A stretch of DNA of 64,000 nt from Lytechinus pictus (taxonomy: Eukaryota), in contig NC_087251.1 of the NCBI RefSeq assembly GCF_037042905.1, positions 35,774,001-35,838,000 on the forward strand, in the 5' to 3' direction. Below are positions 9,979-31,020 of this stretch, one piece after another. The position numbers and the translations under genes are program-made. The notes beneath the pieces are model-generated. The model worked only from the letters and a program-made list of their open reading frames with translations, ran no database searches and was not told where the DNA came from. Numbering within the stretch: position 1 is the stretch's first letter; the number at the start of each line of letters is the position of its first letter.

Positions 9979-10583
9979 AGGGATGGTCCGGGCTGAACGT
10001 ATTTATATTTAAATAAATAGAGTAAAATTCACAAAGCGCAATTCTGAAAATTTCATCAAAACCGGATAACAAATAACAAAGTTATTGAATTTTAAATTTT
10101 ATCAATATTTTGTGAAAACAGTCATATGCACATCATCATGAATATTTATTAGGTGGGCTGATGGTGTCACATCCCCACTTTCCTTTTTCTTATGTTATTA
10201 CATAAAATCATAATTCTTTCATTTTTGCATACATGTGTAAGTGATGTGTCTCCATTATGATGAAATAAGTTGTAGCAATAAATATCTAATGCACTAATCA
10301 GTTGTCAGTCCAATATTGTTATAGTTCTTGGTAGAAAAAAATTTGAATAAACCTAATTTCATATAATAAAATACAAAAAAACAAGTGGGGATATGATATC
10401 ATCAGCCCACCCAATGAATATTCATGAAGACATGCTTAGAACTGTTTCACCGGAATAATGCAAATCTTGAAAATTCAATAACTTCGTTATTTGTTATCCG
10501 ATTTTGATGAAATTTCAGCATTTTGCTCCGTGAATTTTACTCTATTTATTTAAATGTAAATATTTTCAGCCCGGACCATCCAT
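9979..10583. mobile_element. Kolobok-like MITE (TTAA TSD), about 200 nt upstream of SAMD9-like exon 1
   Basis: TTAA|AGGGATGGTCCGGGCTGAA ... TTCAGCCCGGACCATCCAT|TTAA, with inverted arms of about 200 bp. Confidence 0.8.
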
Positions 10584-10787
10584 TTAAGTGAATTTACGTA
10601 TAAGGAACCTCGATATAAGAAGCAGGGGACAGAATGGGAATGATGGAAAGGATCGGGAGAAAGTTAAAACGGGAACGAATGAGAAAGAAAGAGCGTTGGA
10701 AAGAATAAATAAATGATTTTTTTTCTTAGGTTTTTATACACCCCATTTTCAAGCAACCTCTCTCTCTTTGTTTGTTTTGTTACACAG

Positions 10788-10917
10788 ATGGGAAAGAAAA
10801 AAAATTGGAAGAAGTCGCGACGGGCGTCTGATCCACAGCCTCCATCCAAGGAGACAAGTGTACCTCATTCATCTCATTCTCCTGCTCCTGCGCCCCCTTC
10901 AGATGCAGCTCCATCAG
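10788..10917 (+). CDS. SAMD9-like exon 1 (MGKKKNWKKSRR... basic, then Pro/Ser-rich)
   Basis: Preceded by tctctctttgtttgttttgttacacag, so a 5'UTR exon probably lies upstream. ATG at 10788; donor TCAG|gtattt; 130 nt, phase 1. Confidence 0.6.
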
Positions 10918-13706
10918 GTATTTGAACTTCCGAAAGAGGGTCAGAGCCTGACTTTGACGGGGTATAAATGTGCCTGAAAATTTCGACAAGCAACACATTT
11001 CGTACCCTAACAAATTGACAAGCAAAAAAAAGATAAATGAATAAAGGTCATCGCTCATTATTTTTTTTACGGGGTGCAGCTGCATACCCCCCCCCCCTCC
11101 CCACATCCACGCCTTGAAGGTTCAGAACGACATAAATGTAATTCAGATAATCACATGCCTCTCATTTAAAGTCTGCTTCCCACATCAACATCAAAGTGGT
11201 TTTAATAAAAATGGAAAATCGATCTAGTTCAAACATAGTGTCAGTTGTGGGAACGATCTAAAATGTGTTCGAACAGAATTTAATGCAATCACAGTATTTA
11301 TGAAAAAAGTGCTTAACTATTCTGGTGCAGTGCTGAAAAAAATGACAAAACAAGCACGACATTCTAGACAGGTGTCGGATCTTTTCCCGACATCTGAAAA
11401 CAGAGACTTCTACCGTTACAGTGACGAAAACTACGATGCATTTTAGTCTTATCACCATTTACTTGAACTAGATATATAGCTTGCTGAGAAAGCTGTGTTA
11501 CATTGACATGATTGGGGTCGAACCAAAAGTACGAGGCATCTGTAACCTGGACTATCGTACTTGGATTATTTTTATCACTAATTTTGTCTAATTAACCCAT
11601 CAACTTGTCATGGTTTTATTAACTTTTTTTATCTTGCAGATGAATCTCCCACGATCGTGGCTGATGGGAAGACTTTAATTTTTAGGAAAAATGCCACAAT
11701 CAATCGTGGCGATGTAAACACATTCCATGTTGGAGACGTTTATCATCATGACCATACTCATGAGGAACATGGCGGATCTACAGGATTCGAGGGTGAGATC
11801 GTGTATTTCTTTTCCCTTTGATGGAGATTAGACCTATATCATTAGATATGTGTTTATGGGATCAAGCAGATGTACTAGGCTCTGTAGCTCATATCGATCT
11901 CTCCCTCTCTTTCTCTTTCCCTTATTACTCTTTTCCATCTTTCCCTCTATTTTGTTTTCTCTCATACTCGACAGGGAGGACAATACTTTTTTCAAAATAC
12001 TTTTCTCAGCAAGATCGTGCGCTATGTTTACATAATGTTTACATCTGTGTCCTTGTTTGCATATTGCTGCACTTGCCTTTATAAAATCATGTATATAGTT
12101 TCTCATTTTTCCAGTGAGAGACACAAAATTACGTATTCTTTAAATTCAGATAAGTATCTTGATTATTCACAATCAAGAATCGTTTCTCCTTTTATAGAAA
12201 TGGAAGTGGAAGTAGACATCGAACCTTTACCAGATTCTGCAACAACGGGAGAGGTTGATGCTGATGCTACTCCTGAAGCTGATCCTAGAATCCTGAAGCT
12301 CATGCAGAGAATTTTCGCCAATTGCCACAACGTGGAAAAATGGAAAGAGAACACAGACTTTTGCGCCAAATTAAAGACCCTCTTTGAAGAGCAAGGCGCC
12401 CTTCTCAGTAAGGCTCAGTTTGATTCCGTTCATTTCTTCGTTCGTGTCAATGTTGGGCCCAACAGGGATGCCTTCATTCAAGCCTGTAACGACCGTGACA
12501 GCACCTTCTTCCAAGGCTTGACAAGTCTCCTGGTAACTCCAGAACTCGAAGAAGCTGCTGGAATGAAACTCAGACTGAGATTGGCTGTCAAAGACACACC
12601 AGCAAAAGATGTCGTCTCGGCACCAAAAGGTACCTTAGCTTTATACAAAATAATATATTATTCTCATAAGCCTGTAATTTGGGAAGCCACAGAGCTTTCA
12701 CTCTGAAACAAAATTCGGTGTCAAAGTTTTCGGATGCATCCTTGCGATGTGCATAAATACTATGTTTCAAGAACAATATCATACCTGAAGGCAGCAAAAA
12801 GCATTCTCTGACATTATGATAACGTGATTAATGACTCGTTTTAAACTTTGGGGTATATTTTGTTCGAAGCATCTCCTTTCCAAGGTGAAAGGAAGAATAG
12901 TCCTGCATCACCCCTCCCCTTTACGCTTTAAGACCTCCGCACACCTCACGACTGGTCCACGGTCCGATTTGGGGGGAAATCGCATTTTGCTTATTTTCTT
13001 AAAATATGAATGAATATAATATCTTAATTTGAGGTTTAAATTAACTGTAAGAATACTTATATTAAAAAAAGATGATTGCAAGCCTTTATTTTGGAATAAA
13101 GGCCAAATTAATGTAGAACCGTATCCAATCTTGCGACGTCATTACAACTAGATATCAAATTCTCTTTCTCTAATAAGGATGGTAGCATATTCATTAATTT
13201 CAACATATGCATTAGTACGATGATTTAGAACTTTACAGAGTAAGAGGTTCCATGCCTCAATATTCGCATCAAATTTCACTGCGTTTTACTCCAAAAATCA
13301 GATCACAGACCAATTATAAGGTGTGCGGTGTGGCCTTCACTTATTCATGTGCTGACTGCGATGGACAGCGATCCCTTGGGACAGGGGTATCTCCTCCCCC
13401 CCCCCCCCACCTTGGGAATGTTGCTTATGAGGCGAGACGTATGAATTTTCTTTGGGCCAAAATATGCTACGGTATTGAGGTAAAAGCTGGGGGCGTAACC
13501 ATGGTAACAGACATCGGTTGCATGATGTGAACAGGAATGTTAAGCACACCAAGCCTGAGCGCCTGAACGACCAGATTTCATTTTTTTCCCCCTTCTCTCT
13601 TTTTCATTTCTTGTCCAATTTTCTTCCACTTCCGCTTTCTTTCTTTCGTTTCCTCTTCTCACTTTACTTTTCCCTCACTTTCTTTCTCTCCTCCCCTATG
13701 ATATTC

Positions 13707-13751
<45 letters not shown>

Positions 13752-14412
13752 GGGCGAAAATCTCTCCTTCAAGATAGGGGGACACAATTGAGTTTTCCGT
13801 TTTTATGTTCTACAGNNNNNNNNNNNNNNNNNNNNNNNNNNNNNNNNNNNNNNNNNNNNNNNNNNNNNNNNNNNNNNNNNNNNNNNNNNNNNNNNNNNNN
13901 NNNNNNNNNNNNNNNNNNNNNNNNNNNNNNNNNNNNNNNNNNNNNNNNNNNNNNAGAGAACAATGGTAGGCGTAGCTTAAATCAAGGTTCCCCAGAGCTA
14001 TCTACCCTTTTTGGAAAAATTGGTGATGCCGAAAAAAATGTCTCTGCCGGGAATCGAACCCGGGCCCCCAGCTTTGAACGCCGGTGCCTTAACCACTAGA
14101 CCACAGAGACGGGTTAGTGGATAGGGCGACCCCGATCCAATTGACCGTCAGATAGACAGATTTTCGACACCATACCAATTATAATTTCCTTTGTGGTCTA
14201 GTGGTTAAGGCACCGGCGTTCAAAGCTGGGGGCCCGGGTTCGATTCCCGGCAGAGACATTTTTTCGGCATCACCAATTTTTCCAAAAAGGGTAGATAGCT
14301 CTGGGGAACCTTGATTTAAGCTACGCCTACCATTGTCCTCTTCATCCATTTCTTTCACACAATATTTAAATATAAAAAAAGAGTTGCCAAAGCTGTAGTA
14401 CATGTATAACTT

Positions 14413-14456
<44 letters not shown>

Positions 14457-17400
14457 GCAATGGAGATACACACCTGAAAGTTGACCCTGAGTCAACCGAC
14501 TTGAAGTCAGTTTACTCAGAGTCATGTTCAGGACTTATAATTTTTTTGAGCTCGGAGAGTGTACTACGGGCGGCAATGGAGTGCTTTCACGATGGGAAAC
14601 ACAGTTGGGGGGTGTGATCGCTTATTAGAACAGCCACTACGTACATTCATAGACCTGCTGTGTGTTCTGCGGAGCGAGAGCTGATTTTGTGAAATAGTGT
14701 AGTCTTATTCCAGGAACGAATAAATAACTTTTTAAAAAAGAGTAAAATTTGGAAAAAAAATTTGTAGTTGAATAATATGGTTCCAAGATTAATCACCAAA
14801 ATATTTGTTCATTCAATTCAATTTGGATTACATCCAATTAAGTGTACTGAGGCCTAGATTAGTAGGGTTTCCAGGGCTGCAGTTGGGGGGCAGTTGATAT
14901 TTGAATTAACAATATGATAAAAATGAAAACAAAGGTAGATCGACTTGATTTCGATGTATACATAACATATCATAGATCCTGTCCATGTCTCTTTTTTTTT
15001 TTTGGGGGGGGGGGGGTGTTGCACCCACAAATGTAATAACGCCCACAAATGTAATAACACTTTACCCACAAATGTAATAACACTTTACCCACAAATGTAA
15101 TAATTTCACCCACAAATGTAATAATGCACTTTACCCACAAATGTAATAATTTTTGATCGCCCACAAATGTAATAATGACTTTACCCACAAATGTAATAAA
15201 TTTGAAGGGATTTTTGGCGAATCCGTTCTAAACTAAAATCCTATAGTAATGCGTTCATATTGCACAAAAGTGCAGTCTTTTTTCCAGACCCGGTTAATTG
15301 AACATTATAGTACAAGTCCAAAGTCTTTTTCCAGACCCGGTTGTTTCAAAATTATAATATATGTCCAAAGTCTTTTTTCCAGACCCGGTTAATTAAAAAA
15401 TTATAATGCAAGTCCAAAGTCTTTTTTTCAGACCCGGTCGTTTCAAACATTATAATATAAGTTGGCGACCCCAACTCAAGCTCTGCTTTCCGGGTTTTCG
15501 CCTCCTTCAAAATTGTGTCAAAATATATACTGTATTCGTTACTATGTCAAATATTATTTTGTATCTGTTTGAAGGAAATAAATGTGATTTTCAATTCAAA
15601 ATTCAATTTAAAAAAAAATTCAATTCAAAGTCTTTTTTCCAGACCTGGTTAATAAAACATTATAGTACAATTCCAGAGTCTTTTTTCCAGACCAGGTTGT
15701 TTCAAAAATTTTAATATAAGTCCAAAGTCTTTTTTTTCAGACCCGGTTGTTTCAAATTTTTTTATATAAGTCCAAAGTCTTTTTTTTCAGACCCGGTTGT
15801 TTCAAAATTTTTGATATAAGTCCAAAGTCTTTTTCCAGACCCGGTTATTTCAAAAATTATAATATAAGTACAAACTAAGTTACGTTAATGGTATTGCAGA
15901 AAAAAAATGAGAATCGAGCTTAGTCTTTTCTCAAGACCCAGTTAATTAAAACTGGTGGAATTAATGTCTTTTTTGTTGTTTAACTTATACGGCGTATATT
16001 GTGAATATATGCGCTAAGAGTAAATTGAGAATCAAGCGTAGTCTTTTCTCCAGACCCGGTTACTTAAAACTAAAAACTAAACCCTATAGCAATGTGTTCA
16101 TATAGCACAAAAGTGCAAAGTCTTTTTTCCAGACCCGGATAATTAAACAATTACAATATAAGTCCAAAGTCTTTCCTCCAGACCCGGCTATTAAAAATTG
16201 AATTAAAAAACTTCAAATCTAAGACCAATTTTCCAAAGTTTCACCCAGTAAAAAAAATATGTCTTTACCCCACATCCATTTTTTTTAAATAGTACTACGA
16301 CCCAAACAAAACATTGTAATAATGCATGGGCAAAGCAAACATCCTTTCTCCAGACTTGGTTATTATTTGAAAAAAATAAAATAGTTTTTACAAATATTCT
16401 AAAACGAATACCCAATAATCTAATTACTGTGGAATAACATGAAGACCGATTGTCGAAGATCGACTTTCCTCCAGACACAATTATTTCAAGAATAAAAAAA
16501 ATCAATAAAACCCAACCCTCTAAAACGATTCTTAGAACCAACAATCCTCAAATTAAGACCATCCATGTAGAAAAGCACATGTTTAGAGCGTTGTCTTTAT
16601 TCCAGTCCCAGTAATTTAAAAATGATTTAAACAATCTTAAAAACAAAAGACTTTGTCATATTCTTATTCTTTTGGAATAACACGAGTATTATGCTTAGTC
16701 TTTCAAATATTGAAAAAAAAAATCACAGCTAAGACCAATCTTTAAAATTAAACCCACTTGAAATGCTTGGGCTTAGAGTGTTGTCTTTACCCCTCACCCA
16801 GTTCTCTTTAAAATACAAATTAAGCGAAATATTAATCTTAGAACTTAGACCCCAGCACCTTCCAAACTATAAAACCCTTGTGATAACGCATACTTAATTT
16901 CACCAGACCAGTTTATTGAAAAAAAGACAGAACAAACAAAAAAATAACCCTCTTCCAGCCTAACATCCTGTAATAAATGATGTAATTAAACGTTCATTTT
17001 TCTTCCAGGCAAACAAATTTATAATAAAAAACAACATCAAAATGAGTTGTTGACTGACGTTTTATCCGACACTGGTAGCACTGCTTCTTAGCCAATCAAC
17101 ATCAGGAACAGTTGTCAGATCTGACAACTTGTCGGACATAAATGTTGATGAAATACTCCCCCAATCATCTTATTCATGTTGAACAGGCACAAGAATATGA
17201 TTGAGTCTTTAGTTATGAGGATTTCATTTATCTTATTTTTTAAATTACAAGGTCTGGAATAAAGAAAACTCTCTAAACTTTTATTTCTTGAAAGTTCTTT
17301 TAGTTTGAAGGATAGTTGGGCCTTAGATTCTGTTATTTTTTTTAAATGATTTTGGTTATTTTGAAATATTTGGGTATGGAGGAAAGACTACACCATATTT

Positions 17401-20400
17401 CCATGTTAGTCAATGTTGATAAGATTGCAGGTTCTTTGTTTTGTTGTTGTTGTGTTTTAAATGACTTTTATAACTGGGTCTGGAGGAAAGACTACGCTAT
17501 ATTTCCATGTTTTTCAACATAAAGAGGATCGTGGGTCTTTGTTTGCTTTTTTATTATTACTAATTTATTGTAATTATTCATCATTTCTTATTTGAAAGAT
17601 CTGGGTCTGGAGGAAAGACAACGCTATATTTCCATGTTATTCAACATAAATAGGATCGTGGGTCTTTGTTTGCTTTTTTTATTATTACTAATTTATTATT
17701 ATTATTATTATTTATCTATTTGTTATTTGAAAGATCTGGGTCTGGATGAAAGACTACGCTATATTTCCATGTAATTTAACATCTACAAGAGAGTTGGGGT
17801 CTTTGTTACTTTTCCACCAGTTTTAATTAACTGGGTCTGGAGAAAAGACTAAGCTCGATTCTCATTTCATTCCACTAGAATATCATTATTGTGTCTTAGT
17901 TTGGACTTATAATAATTTTGAAATTACAGGGTCTGGAAAAAAAGACTGACATATATTATAATTTTTTAAACGGCCGGGTCTGGAAAAAAGACTTTGGACG
18001 TATATTATAATTTTTTAAACAACCGGGTCTGGAAAAAAGACTTTGGACGTATATTATAATTTTTGAATTAACCGGGTCTGGAAAAAAGACTTTGGAATTG
18101 CATTATAATTTTTTAATTAACCAGGTCTGGAAAAAAGACTTTGGAATTGCATTATAATTTTTTAATTAACCAGGTCTGGAAAAAAGACTTTGGACATATA
18201 TTATAATTTTTTAAACAACCGGGTCTGGAAAAAAGACTTTGGACTTATATTATAATGTTTGAAACGACCGGGTTTGAAAAAAAATACTTTGGACTTGCAT
18301 TATAATTTTTCAATTAACTGGGTCTGGAAAACAGACTGTGGACGTATATTATAATTTTGAAACAACCGGGTCTGGAAAAAGACTTTGGAATTGTACTATA
18401 ATGTTTCATTGACCGGGTCTGGAAAAAAGACTTTGCACTTTTGTGCTATATAAACGCATTACTATAGGATTTTAGTTTAGAACAGATTCGCCAAAAATCC
18501 CTTCAAATTTATTACATTTGTGGGCGATCAAAAATTATTACATTTGTGGGTAAAGTGCATTATTACATTTGTGGGTGAAATTATTACATTTGTGGGTAAG
18601 GTGTTATTACATTTGTGGGCGTTATTACATTTGTGGGTAAAGTGTTATTACATTTGTGGGCGTTATTACATTTGTGGGCGATTATTACATTTGTGGGTGT
18701 AACAGGGGGGTGCAGTTGATATATTAATATAGCATAATACTCAGTATTATGATTATATTTCTTGATATAATGGACTAAAAGTGATGGAATGTTTTTGTAC
18801 GGTGACTGGAGGTCACTGTCTGTAGTATTCACTTAACTTGATGTTGTTTAATATGCCTCACTTCATGGATTTTCATGTTGAGATAACATTACCTCATCCC
18901 ATACCCTGTCTATGACTTTTTTTTTCCAGCGGGGGGGGGGGGGGGATTGATATGATGATTTTGCATAAAACTGTTAATAAAACAACCTCAGTCGTGTGAT
19001 TATATTCCTTCATGTAACTGACTAAAAGTGATGACATGTTTTTTTATTAGATGACTTGAGGGTTTTGTGGGTAGTATTAACTTTACTTGAAGTTTTGGGT
19101 CACTTTATGGTTTTCATGTGTGTACATTGTCTAGAGAAATTTAATTTATCCCGGCATGTCCGACATCCACGTATCATACCTACTCATACTATTTTTTTCC
19201 CATTTATTCATTTATTTATTTATTTATTTTTATTTTGGGGGGGGGTTGATATTTAAAGACGCACATTTCTCGCCAGTAGTTCTGCAGCATGGAGACTTAA
19301 CGCAGCAATGCCCACGCGATTTCGTGCGAATGGGACTGTGTGTTGTTATGACTCTCTTTGTGGATTTTCAGGACTAGATAACATTACCTTATATCCCTTA
19401 ATATAATCAACTCAAAGAGAATATATATGTTTTAGTTTGCTGACTTGAGGTCAATAATGGTGGTATTCATCTTACCTGAAGTTGTTATGACTCTATTTGT
19501 GGATTTTCAGGAATAGATAACATTACCTTATATCCCTTAATATAATCGACTTAAAGTGATGATATATTTTACTTAGCTGACTTGAGGTCAATAATGGTGG
19601 TATTCATCTTACCTGAAGTTGTTATGACTCTCTTTGTGGATTTTCAGGAATAGATAACATTACGTTCTTCCCATATCCTGTCCATATCTTAATATAATAG
19701 TTTTTTTTTTTTGGGGGGTGGAGCAGTTGGTATCTTACTTTAGCGTGAAACTGACCTAAAATATATAAAGTATCTAAAGTAAGATATCCCTCATTAAAAT
19801 CGACTCAAAGTGATGATATGTTTTAGTTTGCTGACTTGAGGGCAATAATGGTGGTATTCATCTTACCTGAAGTTGTTATGACTCTATTTGTGGATTTTCA
19901 GGAATAGATAACATTACCTTATATCCCTTAATATAATCGACTCAAAGTGATGATATATTTTACTTAGCTGACTTGAGGTCAATAATGGTGGTATTCATCT
20001 TACCTGAAGTTGTTATGACTCTCTTTGTGGATTTTCAGGAATAGATAACATTACGTTCTTCCCATATCCTGTCCATATCTTAATATAATAGTTTTTTTCT
20101 TGTTTTTTTTTTGGGGGGGGGGGAGCAGTTGGTATCTTACTTTAGTGTGAAACTGACCTAAAATATATGAAGTATATAAAGTAATATATCCCTCATTAAA
20201 ATCGACTCAAAGTGATGATATGTTTTAGTTTGCTGACTTAAGGTCAATAATGGTGGTATTCATTTTACCTCAAGTTGTTATGACTCTCTTTGTGGATTTT
20301 TTTAGCGTTGCGGGGTGATATGTATCGAAATCTGACATAGTTACCATATAGATCTAGATCTAGTATTTTAATTATGTTGAAAAAAGTACAATTCAATGTA

Positions 20401-23400
20401 AATAGATCTACCAAGAATTGCCTCATCCGGCCTAGATCTACATTTTCAACTTGACAAATCAAATCAAATCAAATTAATCGAAATTTTCATACATGCGCGC
20501 GCGCGCACACACACACACACACAAACCTTTTGAAGAAAATATGGGGGATGGGCGGGGGGGTGGGGGAACAGCAGCGCGCCCCACAAAGACACAAACCCTA
20601 CCAGAAGTAGGCCTACGCCACTGTCGGTACACTTTATTGGATGTCAAAATTGACGAATCTTGGAAAATAAGCGTCGAACCATAATATCACACCACAGTTT
20701 GAACAACAAAAACAAAACAAAACAATTTTAGAGCATTGTTATAATTATTATTTTACTTATTTATTTATTCCTGGAATAAGACTACACAATTACTCAAAAT
20801 CGGCTCTCGCTCCGCAGAGTACGCAGTAGGTCTATGCACATACGTATAGTGGCTGTTCTAATAAGCGATCACAACCCCACATTAATCGCTCTGCGTGGAA
20901 CATTACAATGACAAATCTAGACTCATTATTTTGTTATTAAGGCATTATAATTAATACAGGAAACGCAAATAGAGATGAATAACCAAGCAATAACTCAAAC
21001 CAGTTGAACAGTTATCAAGAAAACAGACAACATGTTAGAAAAATCAACTGAAAGAAACTGCAATCGTGATATAGCCGTTGCCGCCCGCAGTACACTCTCT
21101 GAGCTCGAAAAAATTATAAGTCCTGAACATGACTCTGAGTAAATTGACTTCAAGTCGGTTGACTCAGGGTCAACTTTCAGGTGTGTATCTCCATTGATGC
21201 TGCATATATATATATATATATATGGAAGGCGGGGTAAGTTGAGCATAGGGGCAAGTTGAGCCACCACCCCCAGGCCAATAATGAATGAGTCGAACATTGT
21301 GGTGGTGTCCTGCATTGATGACCCATTACATGACCCTTAACCCCACCACATTGTTTTCAACTTTGAAACAAAAAGTACTTTTATAGAGGGAAAAATACAA
21401 ATTTCAGCCAAAAAAGTAAAAATGGTGTGATATAGAAAAGTGCTTTTTACCCACGCATGTCTTTAAATATAACAAAGAAATAAGAACAATATTGTTAGTC
21501 CAGGTATGGATTCTCATTCTTGTCATAGTCTTTTACATGATGGATGCATAAGAAATGTGTGGATGTGAAAATATCGCATTACGTTCGGACTGGGGTAATG
21601 TGTGCCAGCTAACATGGGGCAAGTTGTGCCATGGTAATTCTTATGGTAATGTATAATAAAAAAAATAATTAAAAAACCTTAAAAGCCATTGATATGGAGG
21701 CAGAAGAGAGCAAATTCACATGACAGTTCTTTTACTTTTAGAGGATGTTAGCATTTATAGAGAATTAGCAAGTGGAAAGTCTTTAAATAAAACGTTGACA
21801 TGCCGGTTCTTCCCGCATACATTTTGTACATAGTTTTTGTAGCTCAACTTACCCCAGAAGGTAGCACAACTTACCCCACAGATGGGGCAAGTTGAGCCAT
21901 TTGACATTGTTTTTTCAAAGGTCACAATGACTTTCAGTGTGGGGGTAGAAAGTTATATATAGGTGAAAAATATTTCCCAAGAATCAAATTTAAAGGCAAT
22001 GTACTTAATACTACAATATTATTATTCATATCAATTCTAACATGCAAAATGCAAAAAGTGTCGCAACTTACCCCGCCTTCCCCTATATACCCTATTTATA
22101 CATATTTCAAAGAGGGGAGGTATTCCTGACTAAAGATGAAAGGCCTCAATAAATAATGCGAGCGCGAAGCACGAGCCCAAATATGTTGATATTTCCTAAA
22201 TTGTGACCTGGAAATTTAACAGTCTGAACGTTTTTTTGTGATCATGAACTAGATGCGAGCGCGAAGCGCGAGCCGAAAGTTTTTTATTTTCCAACCTAAA
22301 AACTGGACATTCGTAACACTTTTTCAAATTATGAACAGGATAGGAAGTACCTAAAAACTGAACATTCGTAACACTTTTTCAAATCATGAACAGAATAGGA
22401 ATTTAACTAGATAATAGATGCGAGCGCGAGCTGAAAGTTTCTGATTTTCCAACCTAAATACTGGACATTCATAGCACTTTAAAAAGAATATGAACAGTAT
22501 AGGAATCTAATCAATTAATGTGAGCGCGAAGCGCAAGCTGAAAGTTTTTGATATTCCAACCTGAAAACTGGACATTCGTAACACATTTTTCAAATCATGA
22601 ACAGGATAGGAATTTAACTAAATAATAGATGCGAGCGCGAGCTGACTTTTTTCCAACCTAAATACTGGACATTCATAGCACTTTAAAAAGAATATGAACA
22701 AGATAGGAATCTAAACAATTAATGCGAGCGTGAAGCGCGAGCTGAAAGTTTTTTATTTTCCAACCTAACAACTGGACATTCATAGCGCCTTAAAAAGAAT
22801 ATGAACAGGATAGGAATCTAATCAATTAATGCGAGCGCGAAGCGCGAGCTGAAAGTTTTTTATTTTCCATCCTAAATACTAGACATTCTTAGTACTTAAA
22901 ATAAATAATTATGAACAGGAAACAATTAATGAGAGCGCGAAGCAAGAGGTGAAAGTTTTTGATTTTCCAACCTAAACTGTACATTCTTAGTACTTTAAAA
23001 AAATTGTGAACAGGATAGGAATCTAAACAATTAATGCGAAAACTGGATCTTTCAAGCACTTTTAGAATAAAGAACAAGCAGTTTATCTTAATAAACAATG
23101 CGAGCGCAAAGCGCGAGCTAATTTTTTTTTTAAGATTTAAACCTACAAAATTATGAAAAAGATTGATATCTTCCTAAATAAATGTGTGTGTAGGTGCCGT
23201 GGCCGACTGGTCTAAGGCGCCTAGCTATACATGGAAAGTCCGGGGTTCGATCCCCGGCCGCGGCACCTATGCCCGTGAGCAAGGCATTTAATCTACAATG
23301 CTCTTTTATCCTGCTTTCAAATAAATTGAAATGCTATATGCATTATTGGTAGCTAGGTGTGCAAAAATTAAAAAAATAAAAAAATAAATAAATGATTTGA

Positions 23401-24294
23401 TTTTATATATTTCGATCTAAAAAGTGAAAGAAAAAATTTAAGCACGTTTTGAAATAAAGAGATGGCTGTGTGCGAGCGATTTTTTTTTTTTTTATACAAT
23501 GACTTGAAAGTTTTCTCTTTTAATTATTCCCCTCCCCTTCCATCATTTAATTTTTTTCCTCGTCCTATCTTTCTTCTTATTTTTCTCCTCACCTTCCTAT
23601 TTTGCGCCGCCAATAGGAGGCGGGCCGCCGCTTCGCCCCTTTGATCTGATGACCCCTCCCACGTACGGCAGGATTTTTGTGTAAAAATGGAATATAAAAG
23701 TCTCGTTAATAGAGTATTTAAATACAATTAAAAAAAAACATAGTTAAAATTCACTGCGAAAGATTAATCATAACTCATAAAAACTATTATTTTTACTGAG
23801 TACGCGAACAATGAAAATATTAGTATATATATTCCAAGTAATTTTGGAATAAAGGGAAAATGAATTGGTTGAACAAAGGTATGTTTTTACGGGGTATGGA
23901 ACATTCTCGTCTACCATCTATACACTAAATTTACTTATAAGTATCCAGGGGCGATTTTCTTTTTCCGTCATTTTTATTAGTTGTGAAATTGACAATGGGC
24001 ATCGATGCCAATGTCATCAATCTTTGGCTGGCATATAGGGCTAGATGCGAGTTCGAGAATAGTCGGGCCGGTATGCCTTTTCTTGTCCTATCCAAGTTCT
24101 TAACAAAAACTATCTGTTTATATTTATTTCGAAATTCGAGGATACATGTGTATAATTTCGATTTTGACTTATGTATTTTTTCCATAATAAAAGACCACAA
24201 ATAGTAGGGGGGACATTTGATATTATGTCCCCCCCCCCCTTTCCAAAATGGTAGGGGGGACGCGTCCCCCCTGTCCCCCCTGGGATTTCCGCCC

Positions 24295-24331
<37 letters not shown>

Positions 24332-27300
24332 AATTTTATTTATACAGACATTTTTACAACTGTTTAATGAGTTGTTTAATAATGTAGATATGCTACTTTT
24401 TAATTGAACAGTGTGGGATGTTGGCAAAGGCCACTCCCTTTCCGAATCATTATTGTCTCGCCTGCATAGCAGAGCGAGACTAAAGTCGCCTCTTTTCCGA
24501 CGGCAGCGGCTGCGGCGTCATCATTGAAATCTTCAGGTTAAGTTTTTGAAATGTCATCATAACTTAGAAAGTATATAAACCTTTTTCATGAAACTTAGAC
24601 ATAAGAGTAATCATGTATTACTAAACATCATGCCTGAGATTTAGGTCACATGAACAAGGTCAAAGGCCATTTAGGGCCAACGAGCTTAGACCATGTTGGG
24701 AGAATCAAAATCGAAATCTTAACCTAAGATTAAGTTTTTGAAATGTCATCATAACTTAGAAAGGAAAGTATATGAGTCTAGTTCATAAAACTTAGACATA
24801 TGGGCAATCAAGTATTACTAATTATGCTTTCAGGTTATATGACCAAGGTCAAATGTCATTTAGGGTCAATGCATTTTGGCCGTGTTGGGGGCTATTGGTT
24901 GAATTGCAATCATAACTGAAAGATTATGGATCTAGTTCATGAAACTTAAACAAATGAGTAATCAAACATCACGCAACATCCCGTGCGAGTTTCAGGTCAC
25001 ATGACCAATGTCAAAGGTCATATAGAGTAAATTAACTTAAATTATGTTGGGGGAATCAAATCTTTAATAACCAAAGTTATTTTTTATAAAAAAAACTTTG
25101 AAAGTATAATAGATCTAGTTCATGAAACTTGGTAATTAGAGTAACCAGGTATCAGTGAACAACTTGCACGAGTTTCAGGTCACATGACCAAGTTCAAAGG
25201 TTATTTAAGGTCAATGAACTTTGGCCATATTTGGGGGTCTTTTTCGTTGAAAGTTAATGGATATATTCATGAAATGAGGACATAGGGGTAATCAAGTATC
25301 ACTGATCATCTTGTACAAGTCTGAGGTCACATGATCAAGGTCAAATAGCATTTAGGGTCAATGAACATATTTTATTATGGTATGAATTGTGTTTTGTGAA
25401 TAATTATTCTATAGTCGTTTTCAAAGTCAGCACTGCTGCTATATTGAATCGCCTAATGCAGGCGAGATTGCCAGAGGCTTCACTTGTTCACTTGTTATTT
25501 TATATTTATTGTTATATTTTAAATTTATTTCGCAGAATATAAAACAAATCAATTAAACACTTCAGTTCCAGTGACAAAAATAATTGTTACAGTAACACCA
25601 TATTTAGACACTGGATGCACCTGGATGAGCTGCCAGGCATTGGGCAAACTTAACCAAATTACTGTAATCCTCGGACCCGGTTCATACCAGTGAAATATAT
25701 GATCTTTCTTCCTTTTTATTCTCCAGTCCCCATCAAAACCCTCCAAGAGATGAACACAGACGAGGTCAAGAAATGGCTGATTGAGGAATTGCGTATATCT
25801 GTCAGCATAGCTGATAAATTAGCAGAAGCGTGTGTAGATGGGGAGCTTTTGCTACGATATGAAGATCAGCATTTACAAAAGGATTTCCAATTGCCTACTG
25901 GAGTGATGCGAAAGATAATCTATGCTAGAGATTATCATATGAAGAAGCGTGCTCATGCACAACCACACCTCGCACCTGCATCAGAATGTTCCGACAACTT
26001 AAACAAAGACGCCGGAACGACGGGGAATATACATAGATCTCCCTCAGCATCTGGAACACATGAAAGTAAAAGAGATGCGCAGATCACTGAACTTACAGCA
26101 TCAGTGAAGAGGTTAAACACAGAAGATGATGACGTGGGGAAATCAGTGGCGGTAGAAATTTCTCAGCCGGCGCCACTTTCCAAAGAAGAAGAATCAGCAG
26201 GAGAAGCAAAGCTGCGATATCTCCTGACAGGTGATGAGAGTGGATCATTAGACCGTTCTTTCCATCCCGTTCTTGTGGTTAACAAACCTGCATTTGAAGA
26301 ATCTCGAGATGATAAGCTAGAAAGTCTCAAGGAAAGGCTCGACTTTGTTTCTCTGGTGAACTGGAATGCAGTATTTGATTGCAATCCAAAGTCTCGTGAG
26401 GATGGAGTATGTTCAATGGTTGAAGAAAAGCGCGAAATCAAGCTTCTCCTTCCTGAGACATTCAACAAAGAAATTCCACCCGAAGAAGTAGATTTCAACG
26501 ACGTCCCTTCTTGGATATTTTCAAATGGACGAGATGATCTTGAAGAATTACAAAGCCCGAGTCTTGCTTCAGATTGGAATGAAAAATATGGCGCAGGAGT
26601 TGATCGTGCAATAGATTATTTTGCCACGAATGCAATTCCTAAGAAAAGAGCAATCGTTGTTTTTCTTCTTCTTTCGAGAGACAGTGTGCAGGTAATGAGT
26701 GATATCTTCAAGAAATTGCAGTCATCTTTGCAAGGTCAAGGGAATTTCACATTCATTGCAGAAAGTCAAGACCTTTTTGAGATTTGGGCAGATGAAGTCA
26801 AGAAATGGTTACCACGGAATCAACTAGAGCAGCGAAGTTTTATTGGTACTGAATGGAAATATGTTAATAAATTCATTCAGAGGCAATACGAACAATTTGC
26901 CATTTCCCAAGCTGAACTGCCCTTATCAGACGGGAAGGTGTGCAATCTTCCAAACAAGAAGCGCTCTCAATGGCTCAACATAGGTGTTCTTCCGTCAAAT
27001 GAGTGTGAAAACACAGACATGGACGAGGACGGTCCGAAATTCAAGAAATTCGTTTCAAAGCAAGAGTTGACTTTCTACAAAGGAAACGATGTCTCTTGGT
27101 GGAACTTTCACCTAACCGAAGGAAGAGGAAAGAAACAACGATTCAACCAAGTTTTACGACGTGAAGTCAGTAAAACGTTGAACGAGTTAGTAAAGTCGAA
27201 ATGGAAGCCAGCCAATCCGAATGATGGATCTAGCCCCATTGTGACAATAACTATCTTTCATGAACCGGGGTCGGGTGCGAGTACCACCGCAAGACAGGTT

Positions 27301-29826
27301 CTATGGGATTTCCACCATCAACTTCGCTGCGTTATTGTTAAGCGAGCAGTAATGCGAACAGTTGAAGAAATACTTGAAGTCCGCCGATATGGGTATGAGA
27401 GTTCAGAAGAACCTCCACCAGCCCTTGTGTTGCTTGATGACATGGATGATACAGAGGTTGTCGACCTTATTGCACAGCTTGAACGAGCAACTAACAACAA
27501 TGACTGTTTGTCAATTATATTACTTCAATGCAAAAGAACACCCAATTCTGAGCTTTTGGCGAAAGACTCAGTTGTTGTCATGAAGCATGAATTGAATGAT
27601 CAAGAACGAAGATGGTTCGATGACAAATTCAAGGAATATGAAAAGGAGTACAGTATGTGCCCAGAGAAGTTGATTGGGTTCATGGTAATGAAAGAACAGT
27701 GTAACCCAGAATATATTCAAAGAATTGTATCAAACATCTTACGTGAGATGAAGAACAATGCAGATAAGAAATACCACAATGAAGCTCAGCTGCTCAAGTA
27801 CATCGCAGTTATCAATAAGTATCTGGGAGATGTCGGTATGCCTGTGTCCTGTTGTGATGAAATGATGAGTGTAGGAGAGAGAATAAGATGTCAAGGAGGA
27901 TACAGATTGAAGTATGATCCATGGGAAAAACATCTTTCAAATGCGACATGCCTTCTCCTAATCCAAACAGAAGTGCATACAAAATCGGGTCCTACAAATG
28001 TAGTAAAGGTGGTTAACTCTGTCCTTGCAGCTGAGGTTGTCAAGCAACTTGAAGAAGACAATGGCCAAACAATTGGAGAAATTGTCAAGGAGTTCATATA
28101 TGACTCTAAAATCCTTGACTCAAAGGCTTACATAAAGTCGTACATCGAACTCATAATCCGGAGATTACTTGTACAACGGAAGAAGATTGACAATGACTGG
28201 AGAGAAAAAAGTGCATTCTCTCCTTTGGTTGAGCATCTTGTCAAGGAAAATCTAAATCTAGCATTTCAACTTCTTGAAGACACATCTAAAAAATTCAAGA
28301 GTGGATATATTGCTCAGCAGCTGGCACGCTTGTACAAATCGAGAGGAAAGCTTGATGAAGCAGCTCAATCTGCGAGGATGGCTACTGACTTTAAGAGTGA
28401 CAATCCTTTCTATTGGGATACCCGGGGCAGGATCATCATTAGCAAAATGGAGAAGTATAAGGAGCAGCAAAATTACACATCAGTAGACGAGTCTGAAGCC
28501 CCCACATTGATAAATCTCCTGGATGAGGGGATGTGCGTCTTCAAGAGGTGTCAGGACATTTTTGGAGGGGAATACAGTTATTATTCCCCCTATGCTGGCT
28601 ACTGTGGTGAGCTAAAGGTAATCTTCTTGTTTATTCACATAATGGAATTACGTGTATTACCGTTTTGTTCCTCATCCCAAGAATGTGTACGTAAATTGAA
28701 AGTTTACTTCTTGACAGATGAAAACCTTCCGGATCTCAGCGTCTTTTGGAAATACAAACGAGAACATCTTAAGGAGTTACCGAAGAGAGCAGACCTCGTG
28801 CTCGATAAAATCTCAGATCTGATGACATTCAGCAGAGCTAAACCAACAACCAAGCAATACCCTGAAGGCCATCTATGCAAGGTACAGTCCGAGATAGACT
28901 TGTTCAATCAGAAGATGCTTGAGTATTTTACAATTGACATACATCAATCCCCACCAAAGTCTGTTCTAGAAAATTCTTGGAGAAGGGCACAAGTGAAGGC
29001 AATGAAGGCTGATTCTTTCTCTGCCATATTCAAAATGGCACAAGATGGTAAGGAGGATAGCCTAAAGGAAGTTAGAAGCATTCTCAACGCAAATAACGAA
29101 ACAAGTGCCTTTGATCTGAAACTATTGGTCTGCATTTCATTTGCGTTGTCCTCCTTAGGCTGTGAAGATGTTGACTACGATAGAACAGTCAAACTGGTCC
29201 AGAAACTCAATGAAATTGACAAAAGTTTGTATGGTGCCTTCTTTGCTATGATGTTAGCCTGGCCAAGAGATGACCTGACTGCAAGACGTAGTGATGTCGG
29301 GATGTCCCCATGGAATGCAGTTCAGAATCTAATCAAGAAGGGGAAAAGCTTTCTTAGAAAAGAAGAAAAAACACCTCATACTAATCAATCCTTTCAACAT
29401 CATCATTTAAATAAACCTCTCACTTACTTCTTGTTTGCCAAGGGAGAAGGGCTGCAGGCATTCCTCCACATTAACGAGTTCCACGCTTCTCCGTCAACAC
29501 TGGAAGATGAAAGGCATAAGTTCTGGTCGAGAGAAGGAGTAAGCCAGCAATTGGTGCGTCTAGAGGGAACAATTAAAGATAGGGGGAGGATCGTGTACAA
29601 AACCCCTGCAAATGAACACATCTACATTGGACTATCTCGCAGACGGATAAGCCAACCAAGTCAAGAAAGGGTCTCTTTCTACCTTGGCTTCAATTTCCAT
29701 GGACCTGTTGCATTCGACGTTTCCGAAAAACGATCGCACTTCAATCCCAGTTCACGAGAGGAATATCAGCCAGGTGCCGTGTCAGACGTATCCAGGGTAT
29801 CTTGTGGGCAGCATACTTGTCCATGA
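10788..29826 (+). CDS. SAMD9-like: SAMD9/SAMD9L-like STAND NTPase, spliced model: exons 10788-10917, 11640-11792, 12198-12629, 25727-29826 (4815 nt, 1604 aa)
   Basis: All three introns are GT-AG with polypyrimidine tracts and all are phase 1, so the four exons join into one open frame (TCA G|AT, GAG G|AA, AAA G|TC). The last exon is a 4.1 kb ORF, like the single large coding exon of vertebrate SAMD9. Linkage of the three small exons across the 13 kb intron is inferred from phase compatibility. Confidence 0.7.
11640..11792 (+). CDS. SAMD9-like exon 2 (DESPTIVADGKTLIFRKNATINRGDVNTFHVGDVYHHDHTHEEHGGSTGFE), cRHIM-like motif
   Basis: Acceptor ttttttttatcttgcag, donor GAGG|gtgaga; 153 nt, phase 1-1, open frame. 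Not in the ORF track because it is short. Confidence 0.65.
12198..12629 (+). CDS. SAMD9-like exon 3, TRADD-N-like domain
   Basis: Acceptor tttctccttttatag, donor AAAG|gtacct; 432 nt, phase 1-1; the protein-like part of ORF 12017..12706. Confidence 0.7.
13816..13954. other. Assembly gap (139 N)
   Basis: Run of N. Confidence 1.
14039..14110 (-). tRNA. tRNA-like gene, Glu-like body, UCA anticodon, full cloverleaf, followed by T7
   Basis: GTCTCTG TG GTCT AGTGGTTA AGGC A CCGGC GTTCAAA GCTGG GGGC CCGGG TTCGATT CCCGG CAGAGAC A TTTTTTT. All four stems pair and A/B boxes are intact; G32 is atypical. It lies in a repeated element, so it may be SINE- or transposon-borne. Confidence 0.55.
14187..14258 (+). 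pseudogene. Inverted second copy of the tRNA-like gene with a disrupted acceptor stem
   Basis: Identical body and downstream flank, but the 5' strand TCCTTTG pairs poorly with CAGAGAC. Confidence 0.65.
15017..18704. mobile_element. Foldback element with TGT...ACA ends (Ginger-like termini) and modular tandem TIRs
   Basis: TGTTGCACCCACAAATGTAATAA arrays (~20 bp units) and ~59-bp CCAGACCCGG arrays are mirrored at the two ends; inserted in a poly-G run. Confidence 0.75.
18705..20305 (+). repeat. Complex tandem array (~120-370 bp higher-order units)
   Basis: Repeated GACTTGAGGTCAATAATGGTGGTATTCATCTTACCTGAAGTTGTTATGACTCT..GTGGATTTTCAGGAATAGATAACATTAC. Confidence 0.8.
21223..22083. mobile_element. 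TA-flanked MITE (Tc1/mariner-pogo-like)
   Basis: GGAAGGCGGGGTAAGTTG / CAACTTACCCCGCCTTCC TIRs, internal GGGGCAAGTTG repeats, TA flanks. Confidence 0.65.
22150..23125 (+). repeat. ~80-bp tandem array with GCGAGCGCGAAGCGCGAGCTGAAA core
   Basis: About ten imperfect units; the same core occurs inside the hAT-like elements elsewhere in the window. Confidence 0.8.
23193..23365 (+). mobile_element. tRNA-derived SINE (V-SINE-like core)
   Basis: A box TGGCCGACTGG, B box GGTTCGATCCC, core GCCCGTGAGCAAGGCATTTAA; partial copy at 36238-36362. Confidence 0.7.
24453..25488 (+). mobile_element. Diverged copy of the same HINE family, in the SAMD9-like intron
   Basis: TTGTCTCGCCTGCATAGCAGAGCGAGAC ... AATGCAGGCGAGATTGCCAGAGGCTTCACTTGTT. 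Confidence 0.75.
25727..29826 (+). CDS. SAMD9-like: SAMD9-like main exon: SAM, linker, SIR2-like, STAND P-loop NTPase, TPR-like, OB fold
   Basis: SAM: MNTDEVKKWL...VDGELLLRYEDQHLQKDFQLPTGVMRKII. SIR2-like start KLRYLLTG..LD..F.PVLVVNK..LDFV..VNWNAVFDCNPKS, compare SAMD9 KLVKLLTG..LDFLKEIKWFAVLEFDPES. Also FYKGNDVSWWNF; Walker A IFHEPGSGASTTARQVLWDF; Walker B LVLLDD; YIAQQLAR and YWDTRGR in the TPR region; C-terminal VSFYLGFNFHGPVAFDV. Confidence 0.93.
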
Positions 29827-31020
29827 AGCAGAGGAACAAGCAGAAACTCTCATTCGAAAATGTAAGTTGAAAACACCATGTGCAAAGATTAATTAAATAT
29901 ACATGTAAACCTTTTCAACAGGTTATCGGTCAATTATTTTGTTCATATTTTTTCCATCAATGTCGGTGTAAAAAAGAGAAGGTGGTCCGGTAAAGATTTA
30001 AAATTTGGGATGAGGGGTTTATTTTTCAAAATAGAATGTTTAAAAATTAAGTTTATTGACCGATTTCTGATATTTTATTTTTTTAGCAAACTGTATGATA
30101 ATGTTTGCGCCACTCCAGCCATTCCTATCTTGCCTTCATTCACTTTCTCTCTATTTTCCTGCTTATCATTCAATATTATCTATATATATATTTTATTGCC
30201 TTTGTATTACCTTTTTTTATCTTGGTTCTGTAATCCTTATTTGTTTCTTGCTTATTTGTTTCTATGAATTACAGCTTGAAGCAATACGGATGAAATATAA
30301 ACTAGAATCGGATCTCCGGGACATTAAGGCTCAAATTTAGGATGAGATCGAAAGAGAAGACGACGAGGACATTTACCCTCGTAACACGAAAAGATGATGA
30401 GTGTTTTTTCATAGAAATGTGTCTAATTCAATTTATCGTCGGGATGCAGTGAGGTGTGCGATTATTATGACTTAACTGTCACTTGTCACACTAATATAAA
30501 CTTCTAATGCATTGGTTTGAAATATGAAAACAATATTGCTTATGATAGATCCCATATATGGCCCTAACTGCTCACTGGAAAAATGCTAGTATTGAGCGAT
30601 TCCATGCTAGAAAATTAGCAATTTCCACAATATTTTTAACCTGATTTACAACGAGGATCTTCAATTTGTTTCTTGGTAATAATAGAGTACTACTGTATTG
30701 TGAAAAATTGACAACCAACAATAATATGCTGTCCTTATGTGAAATACAGGTCAAAATGATTAATTTCTCAAAGTATAATCTAACAATATTTCTCTAGTGT
30801 AAGATAATTAAGAATTAATCATTTGCATAATATTTGAATGAATTGAGGGTACCCAAATAAAAAAAGACGCAACTTTGGTTTGTGTCCGAAAAATACCATA
30901 CCTTGCGTAAACAATAAGAATTTAAGGACCATGTCATTTTCACCAAATTTAGCAGAAAGTTACTTTTGTATCTGTGCATTATAAAAATGCAAAAAGTAAT
31001 ATAGGTTCATGTGCTTATTT

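Follow-up and report, generated by a model that had tools for sequence, protein, structure and literature searches.

The stretch of Lytechinus pictus DNA analysed here (the window; 64,000 nucleotides, contig NC_087251.1, positions 35,774,001 to 35,838,000) carries three small exons and, beyond a long intron, a large exon coding for a SAMD9-like protein. The NCBI annotation splits this locus into a 268-aa protein (P0041, LOC129265793) and a 1375-aa SAMD9-like protein (P0001). An earlier note on the same DNA had read it as a single immune-sensor gene that has lost the AlbA_2 nuclease and gained signalling modules at its N-terminus. Is this one gene or two, and what output could such a protein have? 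The explanation that we favour as a whole, with a probability of roughly 0.7, is one expressed SAMD9-family gene without AlbA_2, with an adaptor-type N-terminus and an output by induced proximity. All the parts of the locus described below lie on the forward (+) strand.

SAMD9 core and absence of AlbA_2

The main exon (exon 4, 25727-29826, 4100 nt, with the stop codon at 29824-29826) encodes a SAM domain, a linker and the SAMD9 core. In a phmmer search of PDB sequences, human SAMD9 was matched with an E-value of 2.3e-82 over ~1180 residues (query 165-1344, chain 231-1431). The homology starts at 26182, the counterpart of residue 231 in the human chain of ~1434 aa, just past AlbA_2; the core, from SIR2-like to OB, extends from this position as far as 29721. 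The Walker A motif HEPGSGASTT (27259-27288) aligns with human HHPGCGGTT and the Walker B motif LVLLDDMDD (27424-27450) with human LLLVDDFEE, and the database matches carry the name SAMD9-like. Judged by its sequence, the gene belongs to the SAMD9 family, with a core of SIR2-like, STAND P-loop NTPase, TPR and OB regions; the claim that the STAND-TPR-OB part had been kept thus holds.

The SAM domain (~25735-25950) was recognised by the SAM part of an HMM made from the N-termini of 24 vertebrate SAMD9/9L proteins (i-E 7e-6 to 7e-8 in the window gene and its echinoderm homologues). The SAM domain of SARM1 in the PDB also matched the N-terminus of the main exon (E 0.02), and the Pfam SAM models alone gave no match to the gene or to the exon pieces. 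A low-complexity linker of ~80 aa (~25951-26181) joins SAM to the SIR2-like region.

The same HMM was run against the six-frame translation of the window. Only its positions 10-100 (SAM) and 384-453 (the part after AlbA) found a match, and nothing further was detected in the whole window, including the 13 kb intron in front of the main exon. Pfam AlbA_2 (PF04326) did not match the gene either. The sole AlbA_2 match in the genome is on chromosome C1 and does not adjoin any SAMD9 core; for this reason it was rejected as the missing domain. The passage from SAM through a short linker directly into the SIR2-like region, as the earlier note had described it, was therefore upheld. The HMM behaved in the same way with all the echinoderm SAMD9-like proteins tested, and AlbA_2 was lacking in 12 of the 12, so its loss is common to them and not special to this gene.

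In human SAMD9L, AlbA is the main effector and the Sir2-like domain a scaffold (bioRxiv 10.64898/2026.02.01.703102). Echinoderm sensors of this family do without the AlbA_2 tRNase, which defines how the vertebrate proteins work, and must therefore have another output. In a single gene, the SIR2-like domain might itself be the real effector, e.g. an NADase as in bacterial Avs5 and ThsA, and the N-terminal modules might only regulate localisation or autoinhibition. This would fit with the retention of a SIR2-like region that aligns with human SAMD9, with the conservation of the echinoderm members even though all of them are without AlbA_2, and with prokaryotic SIR2-STAND systems, in which SIR2 is the effector (bioRxiv 10.64898/2026.02.01.703102). 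However, the Sir2-like domain of SAMD9/9L has no known enzymatic activity according to the same source, and modules of the TRADD-N, SAM and Death types commonly serve as signalling adaptors; we consider a SIR2 effector unlikely and prefer an output through the N-terminal modules.

Gene model and transcripts

Exon 1 (10788-10917) begins with a conserved ATG directly 3' of an acceptor, the structure cag/ATGGG being common to the paralogue and to Strongylocentrotus purpuratus, and its start is also the first position of the RNA contig pieces. It encodes a polybasic leader, MGKKKNWKKSRR, and a stretch rich in Pro and Ser. We considered the polybasic N-terminus as a myristoylation site and rejected it: the PROSITE pattern disallows a K after G2, which is what is found here. 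Exon 2 (11640-11792) carries the RHIM-like motif, with its GT..AG joints present in two RNA-seq runs. Exon 3 (12198-12629, terminal bases ...GCACCAAAAG) encodes a putative TRADD-N-superfamily domain with its core at ~12275-12598. Intron 3 (12630-25726, 13,097 nt) follows and contains an assembly gap at 13816-13954, 1.2 kb downstream of the donor of exon 3; since neither an exon nor a reading frame crosses this gap, its continuity has no effect on the gene model. The four exons, each flanked by AG and GT, splice in frame into a 1604-aa product with a single terminal stop. The 268-aa NCBI model, which begins MVVGKMGKKK, has an additional 5' coding exon at 8106-8120 (ATG GTG GTT GGC AAG followed by GT, coding for MVVGK). 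This exon is doubtful because no piece matching it was found in the assembled RNA contigs.

The joints 10917>11640 and 11792>12198 were found exactly in contigs X1 (5915 nt) and X15 (4931 nt), which come from separate studies and in which the spliced transcript was assembled at depths of 38 and 19. In both contigs the match to the genome ends exactly at 12629, and a further 4962 and 4165 nt follow that do not lie on 12630-12900. In the X1 and X15 runs the share of words from 25640-26240 was 0.87, where ~0.85 would be expected if the transcripts start at the acceptor 25727, and words upstream of 25727 were absent in 8 of the 8 runs in which this region was represented by more than a minor share of its words. 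In the two raw RNA-seq runs examined (X19 and X20), no reads fell on the exons, so they gave neither read-level joints nor information on the strand. The two upstream junctions are thus read in RNA, and the third, 12629>25727, was inferred: the contigs are long enough, the word shares agree, the reading frame is kept across the joint, and three homologous gene models show the same fusion.

These homologous models are the NCBI models of the paralogue (P0002), of Diadema setosum (P0006) and of S. purpuratus (P0042), in all of which the exon-3 domain stands directly before SAM. In D. setosum the conserved order covers the exon-3 domain and the main body only, as read from this protein model. The paralogue, 138 kb away, and S. 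purpuratus share both exon order and splice phases with the window gene, and the order of the ORFs was the same on a contig from an ENA assembly.

The split annotation would mean that a 268-aa RHIM-like/TRADD-N adaptor, ending by read-through at the 12629 donor, is followed by a separate 1375-aa SAMD9-like gene starting from the ATG at 25699. Both parts do exist as separate NCBI models, S. purpuratus has a stand-alone protein with the same module (P0043), and a 169-nt unspliced contig covering 12627-12795 is evidence that the read-through form exists. The depth of this contig is, however, 2.2 against 38 for the spliced form, which marks it as minor unspliced RNA, and the spliced contigs extend 4.2-5.0 kb beyond exon 3. 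Together with the absence of words upstream of 25727 and with the fusion of the exon-3 domain to SAM, at matching splice phases, in the homologous models, this makes two genes a distinctly improbable arrangement. We conclude that 10788-29826 is, as the earlier note had it, one L. pictus gene, that this gene is real, expressed and mis-annotated, and that the annotation of this sea-urchin immune gene should be corrected from two NCBI genes to one. A similar split affects the S. purpuratus orthologue.

When the two paralogues were compared, the 5' exons and introns 1-2 were 89-98% identical (dN/dS 0.5-1.0), and intron 3 measured 13 kb in the window gene versus 5.7 kb in the paralogue. Comparison with the tails of P0002-P0006 by tblastn and three-frame translation showed that the C-terminal coiled-coil tail (29726-30411), present in the relatives, has decayed in the window copy by frameshifts and an in-frame stop; the ORF now ends within this region, which is otherwise probably 3' UTR. 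That the whole copy is a decaying duplicate on its way to a pseudogene, with 5' exons kept intact only by gene conversion from the paralogue, would agree with this tail, with the near-identity of the 5' part and with the grown intron, but is very unlikely in view of the intact 1378-codon ORF, a main-exon dN/dS of 0.27 at a dS of 0.63 versus the paralogue, and the spliced transcript in two studies.

The TRADD-N-like domain of exon 3

An AF2 model of exon 3 had a pLDDT of 74. In a fold search of the ESM Atlas the top row was a TRADD-like_N cluster (TM 0.57/0.65, rmsd 2.9, 107 residues), and TRADD itself was found with a TM of 0.53. Matches among AFDB clusters were invertebrate Death/DED/CARD/HEPN proteins (E 4e-5 to 1e-2), and TRADD entries made up 5 of the top 30 in Swiss-Prot. 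In the PDB the TRADD-N structure 1f2h reached a Z of 5.7, tied with other alpha/beta plaits, and the Foldseek matches were weak, with the TRADD-N entry 1f3v in seventh place (E 0.057). By hhalign, 62 columns of the exon-3 alignment (A1) were matched to a PF20694-positive L. pictus ORF (probability 73.5%, E 3e-5), the two having the pattern DAF..G.L...L....T..L in common. Language-model features gave exon 3 a score of 0.93 to TRADD-like_N clusters.

Searches with Pfam TRADD_N (PF09034) and TRADD-like_N (PF20694) by hmmscan came back empty for exon 3 and its homologues except for a 13-bit partial match in P0045; scanned over the genome, PF20694 matched three other loci and not exon 3. The exon-3 family profile returned only a spurious synthetic protein from the PDB sequences. 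Only 6-7 relatives of the domain, none of them annotated, turned up when it was searched for by HMMER and by word index. The dN/dS of exon 3 versus S. purpuratus is 0.36. Of the earlier expectations from Pfam, the lack of AlbA_2 was borne out and matches to the TRADD-like_N and SAM profiles were not obtained.

S. purpuratus also has a 290-aa protein (P0043) with the same RHIM-like and TRADD-N-like exons, the latter domain being 57% identical, followed by a C-terminal Death domain, which Pfam recognises at E 0.013 and which reaches a TM of 0.6-0.8 to clusters of such domains. The tie of TRADD-N to the Death-like superfamily is thus seen in P0043; the window gene has SAM instead. On the strength of the modelled fold, the hhalign match and this paralogous protein, exon 3 is assigned to the TRADD-N superfamily, as the earlier note had proposed, in a subfamily that the Pfam models miss. 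In L. pictus we did not find the counterpart of the TRADD-like Death adaptor, only its Death exon (56% identity), which lies on C8 with no TRADD-N-like exon within 9.4 kb upstream. Here nature offers a clean case of a matching sensor and adaptor built by exon shuffling, the RHIM-like and TRADD-N-like exons being joined in one protein to a SAMD9 core and in the other to a Death domain.

The RHIM-like motif of exon 2

Exon 2 encodes KTLIF (11669-11683), the tandem motif TINRGDVN-TFHVGDVY (11696-11743; four-sequence alignment A2) and a His cluster, HHDHTH (11744-11761). The tandem T-x-[NH]-x-G-D-V motif has been conserved, and a separate exon encodes it. Its x-[HN]-V-G-[DN] pattern resembles the I/V-Q-I/V-G core of the RIPK1 and RIPK3 RHIMs. 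None of the four exon-2 peptides matched Pfam RHIM (PF12721) at E up to 10, and a genome scan with this model gave four sub-threshold matches elsewhere and none at exon 2. In a loose definition, a RHIM has ~25 mostly hydrophobic, beta-prone residues with a V/I-x-x-G core (PMC9387487). Cores of this type are INRG and FHVG here, LNVG and VHVG in S. purpuratus and LHVG in P0043, chance matches to so loose a definition being common; the first repeat of the paralogue reads INIS. A conserved motif on its own exon was thus confirmed, and the label cRHIM given to it is not established, the likeness being one of sequence to the loose [IV]xxG definition.

A bolder reading takes the tandem T-x-[HN]-V-G-D motif for a genuine amyloid nucleator of the RHIM type. 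Camarodont sea urchins would then have a STAND sensor of the SAMD9 type paired with a Death adaptor that is a TRADD/RIPK1 hybrid, the two sharing the RHIM-like and TRADD-N exons and signalling by templated polymerisation. We regard this as speculative and rather unlikely; if true, deuterostomes other than vertebrates would have an amyloid signalosome, and the SAMD9 family an output that does not depend on a nuclease.

Proposed mechanism

In the favoured single-gene reading, the predicted order of the protein is a polybasic leader, a tandem beta-strand motif with a His cluster, TRADD-N, SAM, a disordered linker, SIR2-like, STAND NTPase, TPR and OB. By analogy with other STAND sensors, binding of a ligand by the core would lead to nucleotide-dependent oligomerisation. 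Without a nuclease, the protein would act by induced proximity: its N-terminal modules (SAM, TRADD-N and RHIM-like) would be brought together and would recruit partners with matching modules. Candidate partners are TRAF-type proteins and, as a TRADD-type adaptor, the S. purpuratus Death-domain protein P0043, and the signal might then feed Death-domain, caspase or NF-kB-type pathways. The switch of output to amyloid or adaptor-mediated signalling is put forward as an inference only, and it offers a concrete candidate pathway for echinoderm cell-autonomous immunity.

Comparison with known systems

Vertebrate SAMD9/SAMD9L have the same N-terminal SAM followed by the SIR2-like, STAND P-loop NTPase, TPR and OB core, at an identity of ~25%. 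The window gene differs from them in the ~80-aa linker that replaces the AlbA_2 tRNase and in ~240 extra N-terminal residues from the three small exons. Loss of AlbA_2 in some members and swapped N-terminal adaptors of the DEATH superfamily were described for the SAMD9 family by Mekhedov, Makarova and Koonin (2017; PMC5445408), and the invertebrate members in that work likewise combine a conserved core with exchanged homotypic adaptors. The adaptors listed there are, however, CARD, Death, Pyrin and FIIND, with no mention of TRADD-N or a RHIM-like motif, and SAM is stated to be limited to vertebrates, whereas the echinoderm proteins here carry it.

Kaur, Iyer, Burroughs and Aravind (2021; PMC8195603) reported lineage-specific expansions of TRADD-N proteins in echinoderms and other marine invertebrates, with the domain joined to many immune modules and often next to Death-like domains, and proposed exon- or retro-element-mediated shuffling for such proteins. 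The window gene is like these in combining TRADD-N with immune modules, and the neighbouring Death-like domain is seen in P0043. The fusion partners found in the text of that paper do not include a core of the SAMD9 type, and PF20694 and PF09034 miss the present subfamily. In the literature that we searched, SAMD9 and TRADD-N occurred together in only one paper, an unrelated one. The claim of novelty therefore stands for the combination of a SAMD9 core lacking AlbA_2 with TRADD-N and a RHIM-like motif, which was not found in that literature; it does not stand for the single features, all of which have precedents, AlbA_2 loss, adaptor swaps and TRADD-N expansions being already published (PMC5445408, PMC8195603).

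Compared with vertebrate TRADD and RIPK1, P0043 shows the TRADD layout, TRADD-N and then Death, whereas the window gene has SAM and the SAMD9 core in place of the Death domain and is therefore not a TRADD orthologue. To our knowledge, vertebrate TRADD has no RHIM. Relative to the RHIM core of RIPK1 and RIPK3, the Q is replaced in exon 2 by H or N, and amyloid formation is putative. With this gene, the SAMD9 core joins the known fusion partners of TRADD-N.

SAMD9 core and absence of AlbA_2

We compared the long open reading frame at 25690-29826 (1378 codons) with human SAMD9 structures and obtained a match with an E-value of 2.3e-82, in which ORF residues 165-1344 are aligned with residues 231-1431 of the SAMD9 chain of about 1434 aa. 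The alignment starts right past the AlbA_2 tRNase domain and extends to the OB fold, and the Walker A (HEPGSGASTT, 27259-27288) and Walker B (LVLLDDMDD, 27424-27450) motifs are aligned to those of human SAMD9. No AlbA_2 domain was found in the ORF by Pfam. In addition, an N-terminal HMM built from 24 vertebrate SAMD9/9L sequences matched the ORF at HMM positions 10-100 (SAM) and 384-453 (post-AlbA), two matches separated by only some 54 residues, and none of the other six-frame ORFs in the window matched it better than E 0.3. The same split pattern was seen in all 12 echinoderm SAMD9-like proteins retrieved, from urchins and sea stars; the absence of AlbA_2 is therefore a clade trait. The absence described in the earlier note stands, although it is not peculiar to this gene, and members of the family without AlbA_2 had been reported before (Mekhedov et al. 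2017, PMC5445408). The single PF04326 match in the L. pictus genome, on contig C1, was rejected as the missing domain because no SAMD9 core adjoins it.

In SAMD9/9L the AlbA domain is the effector and the Sir2-like domain a scaffold (bioRxiv 10.64898/2026.02.01.703102). With AlbA_2 absent, the SIR2-like domain might itself be the effector, which, given its scaffold role there, we regard as unlikely.

A genome search with the NTPase region of the gene gave four SAMD9-like loci. Two, on C7 (where the window occupies 35774001-35838000), carry the TRADD-N module; the others form a head-to-head pair at C4:27595214-27636421, 38-39% identical and of a 2050-2066-aa type, with no Pfam domain in the N-terminal ~550 aa.

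Gene model and transcripts

The exons at 10788-10917 (leader), 11640-11792 (RHIM-like), 12198-12629 (TRADD-N-like) and 25727-29826 (main exon) have AG/GT boundaries and compatible phases (1-1-1). Their product is 1604 aa with one stop, the terminal one, which bears out the four-exon, in-frame splicing proposed earlier. An acceptor immediately precedes the ATG at 10788, and both the paralogue and S. purpuratus share this ATG.

Two genes are annotated at this locus by NCBI. The first model, P0041 ('uncharacterized protein LOC129265793', 268 aa), starts with MVVGK, encoded by a 5' exon at 8106-8120, continues through exons 1-3, spliced just as the earlier note proposed, and ends in 25 residues of read-through past the 12629 donor. 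In the second, P0001 (1375 aa), a SAMD9-like protein begins at the ATG at 25699. Logan contigs from two runs, each of a different study, were placed on 7900-12900. Each run yielded a single long contig: record 5 of X1 (5915 nt, depth 38) and record 12 of X15 (4931 nt, depth 19). The pieces of these two contigs were exactly 10788-10914/7, 11637/40-11791/2 and 12197/8-12629, with zero mismatches and GT..AG joints, so the predicted junctions 10917-11640 and 11792-12198 were seen in both runs. No piece lay at 8106-8120, and the MVVGK exon is thus unsupported by these contigs. Past 12629 the contigs run on for 4962 nt (X1) and 4165 nt (X15), compared with 4100 nt for exon 4, and none of this matched 12630-12900. 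The unspliced form followed by the 268-aa model was found as a separate contig at 12627-12795 (169 nt, depth 2.2) and is minor. Additionally, eight L. pictus runs contained 0.87 of the words sampled from 25640-26240, where ~0.85 is expected if nothing upstream of the acceptor at 25727 is present in transcripts and 1.00 if the region is read through; the exon 3 word share was 0.85-1.00 in the same or sister runs. No reads on the exons were present in the raw RNA-seq data of X19 and X20. We strongly infer that 12629 is joined to 25727, and we consider it quite unlikely that these are two separate genes as annotated, the minor unspliced form being what the shorter model follows. A corrected annotation of the locus is one yield of this analysis.

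Intron 3 is 13,097 nt long and contains the sole N run of the window, the assembly gap at 13816-13954, 1.2 kb past the exon 3 donor. Because no exon or frame claim crosses the gap, its length and continuity are irrelevant to the gene model; a hidden exon is the only thing it could conceal. The ORF at 13518-14099, which spans the gap, was discarded as an artefact of N translation.

Immediately upstream of exon 1, at 8234-10738 and above all at 9904-10738, lies an expressed repeat or transposon family: the summed depth of transcript contigs reached about 20,000 there, and the contigs contained numerous variant letters, rearranged joints and loose ends. An ORF at 34199-34984 (+), 4 kb downstream of the gene, has an Exo_endo_phos domain (E 5e-17) and probably represents a fragmentary LINE-type retrotransposon endonuclease; TRADD-N fusions have been tied to retroelements (Kaur et al. 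2021, PMC8195603). Further along, an ORF at 53067-53693 (-) has a weak MADF/Myb-SANT-like DNA-binding match at the Pfam cut-off (E 2e-4), and strong GC and AT skew was noticed at 42-44 kb.

N-terminal modules

Sequence searches with the exon 3 domain found few relatives, all echinoderm, and neither the domain nor its relatives were recognised by the Pfam TRADD models. An AlphaFold model (8-sequence alignment, pLDDT 74) gave an alpha/beta plait. The top row of an ESM Atlas fold search was a TRADD-like_N cluster (TM 0.57/0.65, rmsd 2.9 over 107 residues), with TRADD itself at TM 0.53. AFDB clusters matched at E 4e-5 to 1e-2 (probability 1.0) and comprise marine-invertebrate proteins named Death, DED, CARD or HEPN domain-containing; the top 30 in Swiss-Prot included five TRADD orthologues. 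TRADD-N in the PDB was level with other plaits (Z 5.7, or Foldseek E 0.057). Language-model features gave 0.93 to TRADD-like_N clusters, and hhalign against a PF20694-positive L. pictus ORF gave a probability of 73.5% (E 3e-5), with the common pattern DAF..G.L...L....T..L. The dN/dS of exon 3 against S. purpuratus was 0.36.

In an alignment of four sequences, exon 2 has invariant positions S2, V6, D8, K10, T11, L12, T19, V25 and T27. Its core is a tandem repeat, TINRGDVN-TFHVGDVY in the window gene and TLNVGDVD-TVHVGDIH in S. purpuratus, followed by His-rich residues; in the first repeat of the paralogue G is replaced by S. Exon 2 is thus a conserved, exon-delimited, beta-prone motif that moves with the TRADD-N exon. 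It satisfies the loose definition of a RHIM (about 25 residues, core V/I-x-x-G, G alone invariant; PMC9387487), but so would many unrelated sequences, and peptide and genome scans with Pfam RHIM gave no exon 2 match at E up to 10. Of the cRHIM-like peptide noted earlier, the conserved motif on its own exon is therefore retained, and the RHIM-like identity is kept as a hypothesis from sequence.

The same two exons occur in P0043, a 290-aa S. purpuratus protein (L008:6001-10204; identical second genomic copy at L009) built of a short 5' exon, a RHIM-like exon with a single copy of the repeat (TLHVGNVD), a TRADD-N-like exon 57% identical to the window domain, and a Death-domain exon (Pfam E 0.013; structural TM 0.6-0.8 to FADD, TNFR1 and NACHT-Death clusters). 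This is the layout of TRADD, and the use of the same two middle exons by P0043 and the SAMD9-like gene is an example of exon shuffling. On the basis of the fold searches, hhalign and this layout, we place the exon 3 domain in the TRADD-N superfamily, among the type that Kaur et al. 2021 described, as the earlier note had supposed, though the Pfam TRADD models fail on it. For an L. pictus counterpart of P0043 we found only the Death exon (C8:13583390); the 9.4 kb upstream of it contain no TRADD-N-like exon.

Paralogue and other species

At C7:35646-35659 kb, 138 kb upstream, is a paralogue with an identical order of parts: leader, RHIM-like and TRADD-N-like exons, a 5.7-kb intron, the main exon, and then a tail exon. 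Its NCBI model, P0002, joins the TRADD-N-like exon to SAM. Similarly, in S. purpuratus the corresponding exons lie inside 8 kb with identical splice phases, and the model P0042 joins the exon 3-type domain to SAM; Diadema setosum P0006 (1602 aa) has this domain, then SAM, then the core, and a contig from an ENA assembly has the ORF order of the window gene. The orthologous S. purpuratus locus, L002:5001-11068, has an uninterrupted ORF at 6314-10501 but is annotated as 249-aa and 1312-aa models, probably through a split like that in L. pictus.

We compared window 10788-26180 with C7:35646500-35654500 and found the 5' third of the L. pictus paralogues homogenised: exons 1-3 are nearly identical and introns 1-2 are 91-98% identical, while the ends of intron 3 are dissimilar. 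The dS was 0.06-0.17 in the 5' part, including the first 150 main-exon codons, versus 0.4-1.9 in the remaining main exon, a pattern suggestive of gene conversion or of a recent, partial duplication involving the 5' module. The C-terminal coiled-coil tail (~110 aa in the paralogue, S. purpuratus and Diadema proteins) is recognisable at 29726-30411, in pieces in three frames and with an in-frame stop within the piece AQI*DEIE; broken by frameshifts and this stop, it leaves the window copy about 110 aa short, ending on out-of-frame tail. That this copy is a decaying duplicate, as a broken tail might indicate, is very unlikely with a main-exon dN/dS of 0.27 against the paralogue.

Proposed function and comparison with known systems

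Exon structure, expression and the domain identities other than RHIM were established here, and the mechanism beyond them is inferred. As in STAND proteins and SAMD9/9L, the TPR/OB/NTPase core would be expected to sense a ligand and oligomerise. Without the nuclease, SAM, TRADD-N and the RHIM-like motif could plausibly provide the output by clustering, and the clustered N-terminal modules may recruit partners, for example a TRADD-type Death adaptor or TRAFs. The analysis also offers a testable sensor-adaptor pair.

Kaur et al. 2021 (PMC8195603) found TRADD-N expanded in echinoderms and fused to many immune domains; SAMD9 is unmentioned there, and our literature search found SAMD9 and TRADD-N named together in just one paper, on an unrelated matter. 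The gene is not categorically new: it combines two known themes, the swapping of N-terminal adaptors in the SAMD9 family (Mekhedov et al. 2017, PMC5445408) and the TRADD-N fusions of marine invertebrates.
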